Part shown: one piece after another, positions 18,666 to 26,855 of the stretch | Numbering within the stretch: the first letter of the stretch is position 1 | Layout: each line of letters starts with the position of its first letter | From: Entomortierella parvispora E1425 | Taxonomy: Eukaryota; Fungi; Mortierellomycota | Direction of reading: 5' to 3' | Length of the DNA stretch: 64,000 nucleotides | Assembly: GCA_020891255.1 (NCBI GenBank) | Contig: BQFW01000005.1 | Span: forward strand, 1,736,001-1,800,000 | Notes under the pieces: model-generated | The model's input: the letters and a program-made list of their open reading frames with translations, nothing else | Databases searched by the model: none | Told to the model about the DNA's origin: nothing | Program-made: the position numbers and the translations under genes

Positions 18666-21600
18666 ATGTCCTACGCCGGATTCTTCTTTGGAAACGTCGA
18701 CAAGACTGGAAAGGTCGAGGACCTGTCCGAGGTAAGGCATCGCAGCACCTCCTCAAAGGACTATGCACTGTTCATTTCCCAGAAATGAACGCGCAATGCT
18801 AGCTCTTGTTTGAATGACATTACTAATGACAAGATCTTGTTCTCATTATTCTCTTTTGTTAGGAATTTCGAGAGGCCTTGGAGAGTCTTGAAAACAGTGA
18901 ACAACTGACCAATCTGTTTTCAGCAAAGAAGTTGGGCGTGGATGAAAATGAAGCCAAAGCACAAGCAGATGGAGCAGGCAATGAAGACGAGGACGAGGAG
19001 GAAGATCCGGATGGCGAGGTCAACTTTGGCACCATCAAATCAACATTTGCTCATGACAAGGATGCCGTCGACTTTTCAGAGATCAACGATCTGGCAGTGG
19101 ACAATACAGAACAAGAGATGTTCAGCAACCGGTATCTGAAGAAGGGACTCAGCGCCGTCCGGTCGACTGCTACAACTGCTATGAAGAGCTCGAGTGGCAC
19201 AGGCGCAAAGTCAAGGCTGGATTCTATGGATGAAGACTATGACGATGAGGAAGCTGACGAAGAAAAGAAGGCTATACCTGCAGAACCCCTCTCGCTCCTT
19301 GAGCGTCAGCAAATGTACCTCATGCAGGAGCAACAGCAGCAGGGAACAGGATCAAAGACCGCATTATCAGTCCCCTTGCCGAGCACCACACAGGGACAGC
19401 CATCTGTGCCATCAGGACCGGAGGAGGTCAAAAAGCTTTACCCTGCCTTTGAGCCAAACAAGGTCCTAAAGTTCTCTGAGCTCTTCAACACAAAGCGTCC
19501 AAAGAGAATCCCGCATTCGCGAGCCAAGCCAGGTAGGCATCGTCTCTTTGCAAGGCAAACTCATGTGGGTGGCTTTTTAATTTGAAATGATGCTAACGAT
19601 CAAGAATTTTCATGAATCCGTCTCCTAGCAACATTCCCTACTCGTTCAAAATTCGCTCGTGAAGCCGATCAGGAAAAGTTGTTTGCAAAGCCCGAGGATC
19701 CTGCCGATCTCAGAGATCACTACTTGGACTATGACCACGAGGTATTTTTAATGAGCATAGGCATATAAGCTGATATCATTCAATATGGCTGTACTAAAGC
19801 AACGATTTCTTATTTTTGTACCTAAAGGAGATCTTGGACAAGGAGTGGATCAACAGTCTTCAGTGGAAAACACCCAAGGACAATGAGTTATATTCTGTAC
19901 AGCTGGAGACTTGGGAAGAGAAGATTATCTGGGATGCTGATGATGCAGTGGTGCCTTCAGAAGACACCAACATGGAAATCAGTTCGACCGCTGTTGTGAA
20001 AAAGACGCCAACTATACCCACAGACTCATTCGCGTCGCGCAATTATGACCTCGAGAACGGCGATTGGGAAGAGTCCATCATGTGGGACGACCACAAGCCA
20101 TTCAAGCCGTTCACCCATATCAGTCTTGACATGAACGACGCCAATGTGCTGTTCGATCTTACAACCGAAGGCATGGGCGAAGGCTTTAGAGGTACATTAT
20201 CGACAACCCTTGTTTTTGTTTCTCAAAGGAGCTTCTATATTATTTCAGGGAAGGGACAGTCGATACTAATGCGCTGCCATATCATTAGGCAAACGTGGAC
20301 GTAAAGCGCAAATATTGCCGTACCGTGTGATTACCAACAAGGATTTGCAGTCAGAGGCAGAAACACATCGGAAACTGGAAATTGATCGCTTCAACCTGTC
20401 GAATGATCGCTTCTACGAGACGCACAAGGAGGGACGCTTCCATAGGGTCCGACAGACTTTTGGTCAGCTTGTTGTGCAGCACGCTCTTCCTGCTGTCAAG
20501 TTGATGAAGCCATGGTACAAGAACAAGTTGACAAAGTCCGAGCTCCGCTCTTTCCACCGTCCTTTGCTTCAAGTTACGCCAGATGTCGACATCACCTTCT
20601 CACGAGTCAAGGGCAGCAAAAAGAAGAAGCAAAAGAGAAAAGAACTCGGCGAGGTCATGCGAAGCTCCAAGGATCTCACCCTTCGGGACCACACCAACTT
20701 TGTGTTGCTGGAATATTCAGAGGAGCATCCATCCATTGTACAAAATGTCGGCATGGGCAGTTTCCTTGTCAACTATTACCGCAAGGAATCAATCGAAGAT
20801 ACGCACATGCCACAAAGCGAAATTGGAGAGCCATTCGTTTTGGATGTTACCGATGCATCGCCCTTCCTGGGCTTTGGAAATGTGGAGCCTGGTCAAACAA
20901 TTATGGCCTTGTACAACAACCTAATCCGTGCCCCAGTGTTTGAGCAACCTCCAAGGACAACCGACTTTTTGATTATCAAGAATACATACAAAGGAGAGAC
21001 CAAGTACTATGTTCGACACATTCCTCACCTTTACGTGGTCGGTCAAACCTATCCTGTCCAGGACGTTCCTGGTCCACACTCTCGAAAGATCACGACGATG
21101 GTCAAGAACCGACTCCAAATCTCAGCCTTCCGCTTTATCCGCAAGGATCCTTTCAGTCGGCTGCGGTTCGTCAAGCTGGTTAAAGCTTACCCAGAGTACT
21201 CTGAAATCCAGATTCGTCAACGTCTCAAGGAGTTTGCAGAGTTCCAGCGCAAGGGAAACAACACTGGATTCTGGAAACTCAAAGGAAACACCCCACTGCC
21301 AACCGAGGAGGAGATCCGAAAGCTTGTTACTCCCGAGATGGTGTGTCTGTACGAGAGTATGCTGGTCGGTCAGCGGCATCTTTTGGATGCTGGTTACGGA
21401 AAAGCTGCGGACGGTGAAGAGGACAATGCGAACGAGGATAGCGAAACGAACATGGATATCGAAGAACAATTGGCGCCATGGATCACGACTCGAAACTTTA
21501 TCAACGCTACCCAGGGCAAGGCCATGTTGAAGCTCTGGGGTGCAGGAGACCCCACGGGTCGTGGCGAAGGATTCAGTTTTGTCCGTATCAGTATGAAGGA

Positions 21601-23577
21601 TATTTTCCTGAGACAAGGAGAGTCCTTGGAGGAGCGTCTGGCTCAAATCGAACTCTTGCCCAAGAGCACTCATCGTTACAATGTTGCCGAGCAGCAGCAG
21701 GTTTACAGGGAAGAGATCACTCGTATCTGGAACACGCAGCTTGCGGCACTCAGCAAGACTGAAGAGATCGAGGCCAATGACGAGGTGAATGGCGATAGCG
21801 AGGATGATGACGATGATGCTTACAGTCGTCAGCGTCGGGAGTTGTCTGCAGTGGACCGGAATCGTGTATCGCCTTCTCCATCTCTCTTTGGCCGGTACCG
21901 CGACAGCGGCGATCGCGATCGCGATCGTGATCGAGACCACGATGACGACGACAATGTATCTGTAGCCGGCAGTATGAGTTCGCGTACCAGTGCCAATTTT
22001 GGTTCGTCCCGTAACAAGTACTTGATCATCAAGCGCAAGATTCGTCAGCCGGATGGAGAGTTGGTTTGGAAGTCAGAGACAATTCGGGACCCCGCCGTTA
22101 TGAACACTTATATCCGACATCGTCAACTTATTGAGGAGAGCTCGATCCGGACAGAGGCCCTGGAGCCCACTGAGGATGAGGCAAAGAACGAGCGCATGAG
22201 GAGACGTATCATGGAGGAGATTGCGCGATTGAACAGAAATCAAGAGCGCAGAATGGCTCGAGCTGCAGCCAAAGCAGGATCTGCGCAGCCAGAGCTGCCT
22301 CTACACACGGCAGCCGGAGCACTCAAGAAGAAAGTGGTGGTAAGTCCTATGCTATTTGCAAAAAAAAAAAAAAAAATCACGATCCACAGGAGCTCTACTA
22401 ACATTGCCATATACACTCTACCTTTTAGCGTCAATGCAGCAACTGTGGTGCGCTGGGACATATGAGAACAAACAAAAAGTGTCCAAAGTATGTGGATCCC
22501 TCGGGAGCGTTGCCAAATCCCGGGTACGTAATCCAGGGAGGGTCTGGAGGAGGAGCGGCTGGTGCAGGTGGAAGCATGATGTCGCCGCCTCACTCTGCTA
22601 TTAGGTCCGGATCTATCCCTCCAATGACAGGAACGGCGGCAGGTACTCCAGGACGAGGTCCAAATGGCTCTGATTACTTCCGACAGGGCTCTCCTCAATC
22701 GTCCAATACTGGCGGAAACAAAATCTCGATCCCCAAGGCTATTATTGATCGAGTTGTAGATCAAGAAAAAGAGCGCGAGCGAGAGGACAAGGATGCGCTG
22801 GTGGTCAGGTTGCCCACCAAGATGTTGCAGTCGGTGCCCAAGAGGAAGCGCAGTGAGTCGGCCAGTCACCACGTGGACCAGGACGACTATGAAGACTACT
22901 TTCCCCCAGTGAAGTCTTATGGTCGTCGTAAAAAGCCCGATGTGGAGTTGGCCAACATTATCGAGGCTGTCCTGTCAACAATCCTGTCGATGCAGGAAGC
23001 GACTGCATTCTTGGCCCCTGTCTCTTCCAAGATTGCTCCTGGATACGATATTGTAATCAAGCAGCCTCGCGACCTTTCTGGAATGCGAGATGCCAACAAA
23101 AACTATTACGCCTACAGGACGGTTGACAGTTTCCTGACGGACATGAGAATTATGGTGAACAATTCCTGGATTTACAACGGAGAGCACTCCCCATGGACTC
23201 AGGCTGCACAGGTACTTTTGAGCAAAGCAGAGGAAATTCTGGCTCCGCAGGCCGAAACGATCCGACAACTAGAGCAGGAGATTCTGGAAGCAGATGTAAA
23301 GGCAAACATTTTCCCTGGTGGAGTCACCCCTGGCGGAAACAACGAAGCAGCGGCAGCCGCTGCAGCCCTGCCAAGTCTTCACCCTGGCGGTTATGGAGTT
23401 TACACCAGCATGACGTTCCCTGGAATCGGCAAGCCCTTCACTGGATTTGGTGCCACTCCAGTTCCTGGCAAGCCATTGCAAGATGGATCAGCACCCATGC
23501 CTTCCTTTCAAGGCTCTGGAGCTGAAGCAAGCCCTGGAGGTTCAGAAGGAGTTCATGTGAAGATGGAGTGGGAGTAG
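18666..23577 (+). CDS. TAF1: TFIID subunit 1 (TAF1) with central DUF3591 domain, Zn knuckle and one bromodomain
   Basis: Exons 18666-18731, 18863-19532, 19629-19741, 19828-20191, 20289-22339 and 22429-23577. Motifs FNLSNDRFY, LLEYSEEHP, GQTYP.QDVPGPHSRK, APWITTRNFINATQGKAML, DPTGRGEGFSF and CSNCGALGHMRTNKKCP; bromodomain F..PV....APGY..VIK.P.DL...N...YNG. Confidence 0.95.
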
Positions 23578-24829
23578 AGACGAGGTTGTAGAGATAATAA
23601 AAAGACCCTTTTTTTATGTACACTTGACAACATCCCAGCAGTTTGATTGCGGTCAAAGCAAACAGTGTCAGATCATGGGCCACCTATGAATACTCCAAGA
23701 GATGAAGATGGATCGGCTTGCTCTCTGCGAGGCTGTTGCATTTTTGGTCTTTCCTAATACACAGTGGGCGCAAAGGTAATTTCCAGAGGGTCATATCCAC
23801 CCAATAGAGCGGAGTCGAGAGCCGACATGGACAACACCGCCCTTATTTTGTCTGAAAATTGAAAAATGGACTCTTGTTCTAGCCACAGGGACACCCCTGT
23901 GGCCTGTCTTTATTTTTTTTTTGCTCTCGCAACTTGCTCCCAATGAGATGTAACTTGGGTTACACACAAAGAGGTTTCTTTACCCAGGGTCAACGAATGG
24001 CCAGTGTTTTTCTGTCGAGCCATGGTGGGCGCCTCTGGCTGTAGTCAGCCCTACGCAGTGATGGGTCGGTACAGGTATCCATAAAAAAAAAAGAACCTTA
24101 GAGTCCTGTTTGCGCGTGCGCACGCTCCTTGGTTCTCGATCTGCCAGATCTAGACAAAGGGAGAAAGAATGTGCGCGATGGGAATTTGTTCCGCAACAAA
24201 TGACTCCTTGGCATCCGTTGGGTACATATCTTTCTCTCCCGAGGGCCGAGGGGGGAAGGACAAAAAAAAGTTCCCAATAATCAAATTTCACTGTGGGGGC
24301 GACTTAAATGTCTAAAAAAAGGCATTCAACATCCTGTGGACAAATCGAAATGAGGTGCAGCCTCAATTGAACTTTGGCAGTGCTGCTCTCAAAAAGAAAA
24401 AAGAAAAAAAAAAGAGAGATGAACATTCATTATTCTTATTCAGGAACAGCGGCAAGGGATAAGACAACGGTAACAGGGGGTTCGTCAAGAGTGTGAGGGA
24501 AAGACGACGGCGTTTTGTAATTTTGAACCAATGCTTTTGCAGAGTTGCTGGGCGAGAGCAACGCGAAAATATACCCACCCACCTTCACGGTGGTACCCTG
24601 TCAGACAATGAGAGAAAGAGACGGAAAGATTGGTCGATGAGGGCAACACTATTTTTGTACGTCTTTCATTTTCCCCTTATCGACACGCGTCCACAACGCA
24701 GGCACTTTTTTTTTCGACGGCCGTTCGTGCTCCCGCATCATGCTCATTCCTCATTGAACAATCGCGGCCGGGGGCGCGCGTCGTTTTCCTCGGCAGGGCT
24801 CCAGGGTTCGTTCCTCTTTTCCATTTTCA

Positions 24830-24836
24830 TATAAAA
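24830..24836 (+). promoter_or_regulatory. Candidate TATA box of the His/Lys-rich repeat gene
   Basis: TATAAAA 176 bp upstream of ATG 25006, followed by a CT-rich leader. Confidence 0.5.
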
Positions 24837-25005
24837 AGGACCCCTACGCCCCATCCTTGAATGTTTCTTTACTCTTCTTGTCCCTTCACATCGCAATACC
24901 CATTTCTGTTTCCTACTGTCGCCCCTTCCGAGTTCTCATCTCACTCACTCAATACCCCCATAACCACTGTATCCTTATCCCTGAAAACAAACACAACCGT
25001 CCATA

Positions 25006-25767
25006 ATGAAATTCCTCTCCTCTTCCGTTGTTCTCTCGCTCTTGGTCAGCATGACCCTCCTCCAGTCGACCTTGGCTAACCCCGTCGCCACCACTGGTGA
25101 GGTTGTCCCTGCCTTCATGGCCGCTGCCCCTGCCAAGGCCCCAGCTCACCCCCACCCCAAGACTGCCCCTCACCACAAGGGTGGCGAGGCCCCCCACCAC
25201 AAGGGAGGCAAGGCTCCCCACCACAAGGGTGGCAAGGCTCCTCACCACAAGGGTGGCAAGCCTGAGCACCCTGGCAAGCCTCACCCCAAGCGCGACTTGG
25301 AGGAGATTGACGTTGAGGCTGCTGCTGCACCTGCCCCCGCCAAGCCCCAGCCCCACCACAACCCCGCTCCTGCCCCCCACAAGCCCGGCAAGCCCGCTCC
25401 CCACAAGCCCGGCAAGCCCGCTCCCCACAAGCCCGGCAAGCCTGCTCCCCACAAGCCTGGCAAGCCTGCTCCTCACCACAAGCCTGGCAAGCCTGCTCCT
25501 CACAAGCCTGGCAAGCCTGCCCCCCACAAGCCCGGCAAGCCTGTTCCTCACAAGCCCGGCCCCAAGCGCTCCTTGCCTGAGGAGTTTGAGGCTGCTGCTG
25601 CCAAGGAGCCCCACCACAAGGGTGGCAAGGCTCCCCACCACAAGGGCGGCAAGGCCCCCCACCACAAGGGTGGCAAGGCCCCCCACCACAAGGGTGGCAA
25701 GGCCCCTCACCACAAGGGTGGCAAGCCCGCTCCTCACCACAAGCCCAGCAAGCCTGAGCACCAGTAA
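25006..25767 (+). CDS. Secreted His/Lys/Pro-rich tandem-repeat precursor with two KR (Kex2-type) sites (KEP-like), 253 aa
   Basis: Hydrophobic signal peptide; repeat blocks (PHHKGG)x4, (HKPG)x8 and (PHHKGG)x5, separated by PKR-DLEEIDVEAAAA and PKR-SLPEEFEAAAA. Strong C/G-ending codon bias, intronless. Confidence 0.9.
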   Translation: MKFLSSSVVLSLLVSMTLLQSTLANPVATTGEVVPAFMAAAPAKAPAHPHPKTAPHHKGGEAPHHKGGKAPHHKGGKAPHHKGGKPEHPGKPHPKRDLEEIDVEAAAAPAPAKPQPHHNPAPAPHKPGKPAPHKPGKPAPHKPGKPAPHKPGKPAPHHKPGKPAPHKPGKPAPHKPGKPVPHKPGPKRSLPEEFEAAAAKEPHHKGGKAPHHKGGKAPHHKGGKAPHHKGGKAPHHKGGKPAPHHKPSKPEHQ

Positions 25768-26855
25768 GCTAGATGTGCAAGCGAACGTGCGCAGAAAGAG
25801 ATAAGGAGCAGCGGGACCGACCAATGCTGGGCATTGGTAGGCAAGGAACTAAGCGTCCAACTGCGGCCAACTTGGCAGGCAAGTAAACCGGCCAACCCGT
25901 TAGCAACAAAGACAAAGACGCGACACACACACGTTCATTGCATGCAGCCACAACAGCAACAAATAAAAAAGAATAGAACAAAAACAAAAGGAAATATGAA
26001 CATGCAACTAGCGTGATTTCAAAGGACACCAAATCACACTGGATCCAGCTGGGCTGGGGATGTCCTCTTCAGGGCCGTTTGGACCCTTTTCGTCCTTTTC
26101 TTTTCTTTTCTTTTCTTCTTCTTCTCTCTCTTGTCCATCCACACATGCATGCATACATGCAGCGGTGCATCCTCCCGTCTGTCTCTCCCTCTGTTCTCTC
26201 TCCTGCACCTGCATCTCTCTGTCTCTCTTTCTCCTCTTTTCATGCAACAACAACAACAACAACAACAGCAACCGACTGACATTCCAGCCCTGACCAACTG
26301 ACTGACCTTAATTGAACTATGCTTCATTCCACCTCCCGCTCATTGCAGCAGCAGCAGCGGTTATGGTCCGTCCTGCTTCTCGTGATTGCGCTGGCTGCTC
26401 CCATGCTGCTGTCCTCCTCGGCACACGCGGTCGACATGGCCGGTATGTCCACATGATTTCACATGGATGATTGAGCACACACACAAACACCCACGCACCC
26501 ACCCCACCAGCCAACCACGGGACCCGTCCCGTCCTGAAGGCTCTCTTATAACCATCCGGTCTCCTGGCCTGTAAAGTCCCTTTTTTGTTTCTCTTCCTTT
26601 GACCTTCTTCTTGTTCTTCTTCTTCTTCTTCATTCACTCCATCCTTCTACTTCAGCACTCGACTCGGACCCTCGGGAGACACCCGCCCTAAACGACCTCG
26701 ACAGAGAGAGCGATCCTTCAACAGGACCCTTTCATGCCCTTGCTGCCGAGACTCATTCTTCTCCCTCTCGATTCTCAACCAATCGACCCCACGACGCTTT
26801 AGCGGTAGACCCCACCGTTCAACAACGCTCACTCGTATACCAGGATCCAGCATCC

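Follow-up and report, generated by a model that had tools for sequence, protein, structure and literature searches.

The window, a 64,000-nucleotide stretch of contig BQFW01000005.1 (GCA_020891255.1), holds a real gene for a secreted, intrinsically disordered polycation that is confined to a narrow lineage of the Mortierellaceae; its secretion is predicted. Accessions BQFW01000001-19 belong to Entomortierella parvispora E1425, a soil fungus of this family (PMC8759367). The protein is read here as a precursor from which a Kex2-type protease would release three polycationic polypeptides that bind anionic surfaces, and this proposal, taken as a whole, is given a probability of roughly 45%. By predicted design it would be a homologue-poor member of an established class, the Kex2-site repeat precursors, which are known in Mucoromycota (PMC6339444).

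The coding sequence is located at 25006-25767 on the forward strand. It is a single-exon ORF of 253 codons plus TAA, uninterrupted from the ATG to the stop codon. The translation is identical to the 253-aa protein of the preliminary description and is matched letter for letter in the assembly, where a gene of the same length is annotated. The gene is supported by this translation, the NCBI gene call, third-position variation, and codon bias. A TATA-like box (TATAAA, 24830-24835, +), a putative promoter element identified by its motif, lies approximately 170 bp upstream of the ATG. An AATAAA sequence (25962-25967, +), approximately 195 bp past the stop codon, is a possible polyadenylation signal, also by motif.

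The reading frame can be judged from the repeats, which are of two types, PHHKGGKA (A) and PHKPGKPA (B). Among the canonical repeat units, all variable nucleotides but one fall at third codon positions of the ORF frame. Pairwise codon differences between the A units are 29 synonymous and 6 non-synonymous, all six arising from one K>E change, while the B units show 20 synonymous and 0 non-synonymous differences. The frame at 25006-25767 (+) is therefore under coding constraint. Long ORFs in other frames overlap the gene at 24949-25824 (-) and 25097-25804 (+). They are open because the repeats contain no stop codons, so ORF length alone is no proof of a gene. As genes, both are contradicted by the third-position pattern. 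Codon choice is strongly skewed, with CAC used for 36 of 36 His, GAG for 11 of 11 Glu, and AAG for 41 of 42 Lys. Codons ending in A make up 2% of the ORF compared with 7-23% in five neighboring ORFs, and the bias extends to the non-repeat parts. Such a bias would fit a gene with strong expression.

A second isolate, labeled as the same species, is approximately 96-97% identical. Its contig pieces that lie wholly within the ORF have 0 or 3 gap letters, and 12 listed indels, mostly of 1-2 bases, fall immediately past the stop codon. Between the isolates, the pattern of indels that preserve the frame ends at the stop codon. In a more divergent isolate (approximately 90% identical) the start of the ORF is present and adjoins the same upstream gene, and loose contig ends encode variants of the His/Lys/Pro/Gly repeats.

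These observations bear on whether the locus has any function. It could be a decaying pro-domain remnant, with the Cys-rich cargo lost and slippage repeats filled in, or an annotated ORF that is never expressed. The repeat blocks appear in no homologue found in the protein-library searches, the low-complexity repeats keep other frames open too, and two metatranscriptomes, in which 4-5% of the sampled words occur, gave no match on the stretch. An RNA-seq library of E1425 exists (DRA013164; PMC8759367). Set against this reading are the third-position-only variation among repeat copies, the indels that preserve the frame as far as the stop codon, the extreme codon bias outside the repeats, the conservation of the TATA-box region and the leader, and the position of the locus beside the same upstream gene in the more divergent isolate. 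A locus without function is considered very unlikely.

Upstream of the gene, ORFs with DUF3591 and a bromodomain (20315-23577) belong to one TAF1-like gene, 1470 aa by the NCBI call, which is an ordinary housekeeping gene. Pfam returned nothing for the downstream gene. The interval between the repeat-protein gene and this neighbor contains tracts of low complexity (26086-26278 and 26474-26639), among them a CAA/CAG run. These tracts are skipped or replaced in the second isolate (193 bases become 214), and the intergenic region is therefore length-polymorphic. A run with the same species label is only approximately 85-90% identical across 22900-25200 and has large replaced intergenic segments, which suggests cryptic diversity or mislabeling under the species name. 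No paralogues were found within the window by tblastn.

Five amino acids (54 Pro, 42 Lys, 36 Ala, 36 His, and 28 Gly) make up 77% of the protein, and Cys, Trp, and Tyr are absent from its 253 residues. His accounts for 14% of residues and forms 12 His-His pairs. The whole protein contains two Arg (R96 and R188), each within a PKR sequence, and has no KK or RR. The signal peptide (residues 1-24; 25006-25077, +) is predicted by rule. It has an MK start, a hydrophobic core at residues 3-20 with a maximum Kyte-Doolittle value of 2.49 at residues 8-18, and a predicted cut after A24 in the context T-L-A/N, where the slash marks the cut, in keeping with the -3/-1 rule. Beyond the signal peptide, the Kyte-Doolittle threshold of 1.6 is exceeded by a single 11-residue segment, which falls at residue 33, within the FMAAA part. 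Judged by rule, the protein thus has the signal peptide, and no further membrane segment, as called for in the KEP screen of Le Marquer et al. (PMC6339444). Disorder is predicted by the ESM Atlas model (pLDDT 0.37, pTM 0.11), and Pfam and PDB sequence searches of the 253-aa protein returned no match.

Three modules follow the signal peptide on a common plan, each with an acidic/Ala-rich head, 8-residue repeats, and a Pro-Lys tail; all of the features below are on the forward strand. The module 1 head (residues 25-42; 25078-25131) is pro-region-like, contains EVVP.FMAAAP, has a net charge of -1, and is conserved in a Gryganskiella relative. Block 1 (residues 43-94; 25132-25287) has four PHHKGGKA-type units and a KP-rich tail, and is followed by dibasic site 1 (K95-R96; 25288-25293; PHPKR/DLEEID), a motif at which cleavage is predicted. 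The module 2 head (residues 97-109; 25294-25332) is acidic/Ala-rich by composition with a net charge of -5. Block 2 (residues 110-186; 25333-25563) has eight PHKPGKPA-type units and leads to dibasic site 2 (K187-R188; 25564-25569; PGPKR/SLPEEF), likewise a motif with putative cleavage. The module 3 head (residues 189-202; 25570-25611), also acidic/Ala-rich by composition and by module alignment, has a net charge of -3. Block 3 (residues 203-253; 25612-25764) has five PHHKGGKA-type units with a hybrid tail and a hydrophilic C-terminus. The blocks were delimited by repeat analysis, and the repeat counts, the three spacers, the PKR sequences at R96 and R188, and the absence of Cys are as the preliminary description gave them.

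Three arrays of 24-bp units were detected by Tandem Repeats Finder, with 3.8, 7.9, and 5.8 copies and 90-92% identity. In alignment, the modules (two A-type and one B-type) show 52-70% identity to module 1. The module 2 and module 3 heads are 61% identical over 23 aa, and the two module junctions are recognizably duplicated (both by tblastn).

The KR sites are placed exactly at the module borders and contain the sole Arg of a chain that has 42 Lys. Among composition-preserving shuffles, 3% have a Lys before each of the two Arg. A single duplication event probably accounts for both sites, which are hence not independent. In module 2, 16 of the 17 Lys precede Pro and the exception is the Lys of KR, which is therefore the only unprotected basic bond there. 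The core of the sites is canonical, with Lys at P2 and Arg at P1, and agrees with the Kex2 motif from the literature (PMC8528282). Kex2 accepts an acidic P1', and P4 is His or Gly at the two sites, not the preferred aliphatic residue. Cutting in silico at KR gives three fragments of 72, 92, and 65 residues. After Kex1 trimming, the predicted products would be 70, 90, and 65 residues in length (7.1, 9.2, and 6.9 kDa).

Kex2-processed fungal secreted proteins have been sorted into two classes, peptide-releasing repeat precursors and pro-domain (K2PP) proteins (PMC8528282). The KEP-like design proposed in the preliminary description holds for the signal peptide and for the KR sites at module borders, but not for the formal screen. 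The screen of Le Marquer et al. 2019 requires at least four fragments after cuts at every KR/RR (or KK), with at least three fragments containing one common repeated motif (PMC6339444), and the protein yields three fragments. In the Umemura 2020 variant, separated sequences may not exceed 100 aa and repeats must span at least 8 aa (PMC7329392); the 72-, 92-, and 65-aa fragments fall within it. Of the K2PP features, a disordered pro-domain (residues 25-96) ending in PKR within the first half of the protein is present. A folded mature domain is absent, and residues 97-253 are low-complexity repeats.

If the protein were secreted but left uncleaved, it would be a 229-residue polycation of approximately 24 kDa in which a polyproline-type rod joins two flexible, sticky ends. 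It would bind acidic polymers of the fungus's own wall or matrix, or soil surfaces, non-covalently as an adhesive or wall coat. The Pro-rich 8-residue repeats and the A-B-A layout do resemble extended structural repeat proteins, and the nearest language-model neighbors include ‘early nodulin 75’-like clusters (score 0.77, lead level). P4 is suboptimal at the two KR sites, and the P3 Pro and proline-rich context might limit protease access. The usual covalent wall-anchoring features, however, are all absent. The C-terminus is hydrophilic (mean Kyte-Doolittle -2.3) and lacks a GPI-anchor signal, no N-x-S/T sequon (hence no N-glycosylation site) or Gln-rich PIR motif is present, Ser and Thr number only 8 and 5 in the entire protein, and Cys and Tyr, which could serve in cross-linking, are missing. 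The protein does not have the makeup of a covalently anchored wall protein of the GPI-CWP or PIR kind. The exact placement of KR at the module borders, with no other Arg among the 42 Lys, and the conservation of one junction within a pro-domain in another genus also count against an uncleaved product. This outcome is regarded as somewhat unlikely.

Charge was computed for the modules with their spacers. Net values are +7.0, +10.9, and +7.7 at pH 7.4 and +18.6 to +21.8 at pH 5. The mature chain goes from approximately +31 at pH 7.4 to approximately +65 at pH 5, a rise due to the 36 His. The basic repeats had been described as neutralized by anionic spacers until processing, and this does not agree with the computed values. 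The spacers are only -1, -5, and -3, and the modules remain at +7 to +11 at pH 7.4. A role for the spacers as removable separators was also rejected. Each spacer sits after a KR and therefore stays, following the cut, on the N-terminus of the next product. Neither KR is followed by a Ste13-type X-Ala/X-Pro run, so stepwise spacer removal is not predicted.

An exhaustive phmmer search of 1.84 billion proteins gave 95 matches at E<=1e-3, with one true relative among those inspected. This relative is KAG0048919.1 from Gryganskiella cystojenkinii (phmmer E 3.2e-4). By tblastn, its locus is 60.6% identical to the window over 71 aa (E 6.7e-18). The locus (L001:437-1000; JAAAIG010000337.1) contains an uninterrupted ORF that encodes 187 aa and includes the complete signal peptide as well as an 8-Cys domain and two KR sites. 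The GenBank model KAG0048919.1 (136 aa) is missing most of the signal peptide and its end differs from the DNA; the model is probably mis-spliced.

Similarity between the window protein and the Gryganskiella ORF is limited to three collinear parts, namely signal peptide, pro-region, and PKR/DLEE junction. In alignment, 16 of the 24 signal peptide residues are invariant. PKR/DLEE is identical in the Gryganskiella ORF, and ten residues further on is an LDKR followed by the Cys-rich domain. In place of block 1, the Gryganskiella ORF has a single HHGG, where the window protein has a 30-residue repeat insertion. A TATAAA.AGG.CCCC element can be aligned upstream of both genes. No synteny beyond the leader was detected between the two loci by tblastx.

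The Cys-rich domain of the Gryganskiella protein has no Pfam match, and its single-sequence AlphaFold2 model (pLDDT 49) is unusable. Its Atlas feature neighbors are Ascomycota clusters with Hce2 or Kp4 (0.86-0.87; lead level).

The word-indexed search returned nothing at E<=0.01 for the whole 253-aa protein, three candidates for the leader (residues 1-54), none of which scored, and only itself for the Gryganskiella ORF. The other phmmer matches that were inspected are spurious period-8 low complexity, and include RRPGDPAT-type ORFs, beetle APHHSGEK repeats, and an octopus protein. Period-8 repeat proteins of this kind flood HMMER results with E values down to 1e-14, and are register matches, not homology. 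The RRPGDPAT-type ORFs resemble translated repeat DNA. A single metagenome match to the degenerate EVVP.FMAAAP pattern lies on the antisense strand of a bacterial gene and was rejected as chance. With no full-length homologue in two very large protein libraries, the earlier characterization of the family as undescribed is fair.

The window gene has a peptide-precursor layout and the Gryganskiella gene a K2PP layout, with one leader common to both. The Gryganskiella layout points to a Kex2-type leader and supports the predicted cleavage at R96. In the relative, LDKR alone may be used, and the conservation of PKR/DLEE could serve another purpose.

The gene is proposed to have arisen from a Kex2-type pro-domain module that expanded and was triplicated, through growth of repeats within the pro-domain and duplication of the module as a whole. 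Kexin in the late Golgi would cut after R96 and R188, and Kex1 would remove K-R. Three polypeptides of approximately 70, 90, and 65 residues would be secreted, each with its acidic head. Outside the cell, they would bind electrostatically to anionic surfaces, either microbial envelopes or acidic wall/matrix polymers. This binding would be stronger at acidic pH, as the charge on His rises, and Zn or Cu at the 12 His-His pairs could tune it. The Pro-rich middle block, with every Lys before Pro, may form a protease-resistant extended rod, and the Gly-rich outer blocks would be flexible. One point against this scheme is that classical His-rich antimicrobial peptides are far shorter than these pieces, which also lack any amphipathic or aromatic content.

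The His content also permits a reading in which metal handling is primary. The protein, cleaved or intact, would be a secreted His-rich buffer or scavenger of Zn, Cu, or Ni, with a purpose like that of fungal zincophores. The 36 His (14%) and 12 His-His pairs agree with this, and Zn and Cu are bound in vitro by His-His within an identical heptapeptide. That heptapeptide, HHKGGKA, occurs in the human semenogelin peptide SgI-29, whose His-His coordinates Zn(II) and Cu(II) (PMC10466376). The identity with SgI-29 is one of chance and is useful only as chemical precedent. Semenogelin peptides are only weakly active (MIC50 256 ug/mL), which counts against the surface-binding scheme, and the antibacterial activity of SgI-29 is aided by metal (PMC10466376). 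Against metal handling as the primary role, the protein has no similarity to a Pra1/Zps1-type zincophore and no Pfam or PDB match, and the 42 Lys are left unexplained. Most His of the middle block stand singly, at 8-residue intervals along a rigid Pro-rich chain, which would be a poor geometry for chelation. A primary metal role is judged unlikely. Binding of the released pieces to anionic surfaces, tuned by pH and metal, is favored, and the uncleaved polycation and the metal buffer are its main rivals.

Cationic His-rich host-defense polypeptides of animals offer a chemical parallel. Histatins, the GHHPH repeats of histidine-rich glycoprotein, kininogen domain 5, and semenogelin fragments are alike in His/Lys content, disorder, and His-His pairs. 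They are not homologous to the fungal pieces, which are of much greater length, rich in Pro, and devoid of aromatics. Metal binding and antimicrobial action by the fungal pieces are proposed by chemical analogy.

Among fungal systems, the KEPs (alpha-factor precursors, Ustilago Rep1, Candida Ece1, and arbuscular mycorrhizal SP7; PMC6339444, PMC7329392, PMC5293756) also have a signal peptide and KR-delimited repeated modules. They share with the window protein an acidic residue just after the site, the absence of a folded domain, and several pieces predicted per transcript. KEPs of Mucoromycota tend to have larger pieces (PMC6339444). The window protein differs in having two KR sites and three pieces, below the minimum of the screen. 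Its pieces run to 65-90 residues and consist of nested 8-residue repeats with two chemistries in A-B-A order. It also lacks a Ste13 signature after KR and has no sequence relationship to any listed KEP.

The K2PP effectors (SnTox3, ToxA, and SIX1/4/6; PMC8528282) are connected to the window protein through its leader, which is homologous to that of the Gryganskiella protein of K2PP layout. Unlike these effectors, the window protein has no folded mature domain and has two more pro-domain-like modules after the first KR.

Insect apidaecin-type precursors resemble it in having a signal peptide, multiple Pro-rich cationic units, processing sites, and acidic spacers, with a language-model feature similarity of 0.66 (lead level). 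Apidaecin spacers are removed by dipeptidyl aminopeptidase, the products have approximately 18 residues, and there is no sequence relationship to the window protein.

A bolder proposal is that a Kex2 pro-domain has itself turned into the product. On this view, amplification and triplication of the His-containing leader from an effector-type, Cys-rich gene would have produced a precursor without cargo. It would release polycations switchable by pH and zinc, a fungal counterpart of histatin and histidine-rich-glycoprotein defense in animals, perhaps controlling bacteria around or within the hyphae. The fungus naturally houses Burkholderia-related endobacteria. This extended proposal is decidedly improbable.

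Should the protein prove uncleaved or unexpressed, it would be another low-complexity secreted protein particular to one lineage, with little interest beyond it. The new features are the nested repeats, the long His/Lys products, the failure in the formal KEP screen, and the leader in common with a K2PP-type gene. Secreted Kex2-site repeat precursors are found fungi-wide, and almost none in early-diverging lineages has a known function. The leader in common with a Cys-rich effector-like protein suggests that the pro-domains of ordinary secreted proteins can give rise to peptide precursors. The predicted products would be the first fungal polypeptides to use the zinc- and pH-dependent His/Lys defense chemistry of animals. 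E. parvispora E1425 hosts a culturable Burkholderiaceae-related endobacterium (PMC8759367), and its presence makes an antibacterial or bacterium-taming role of these polypeptides directly testable.
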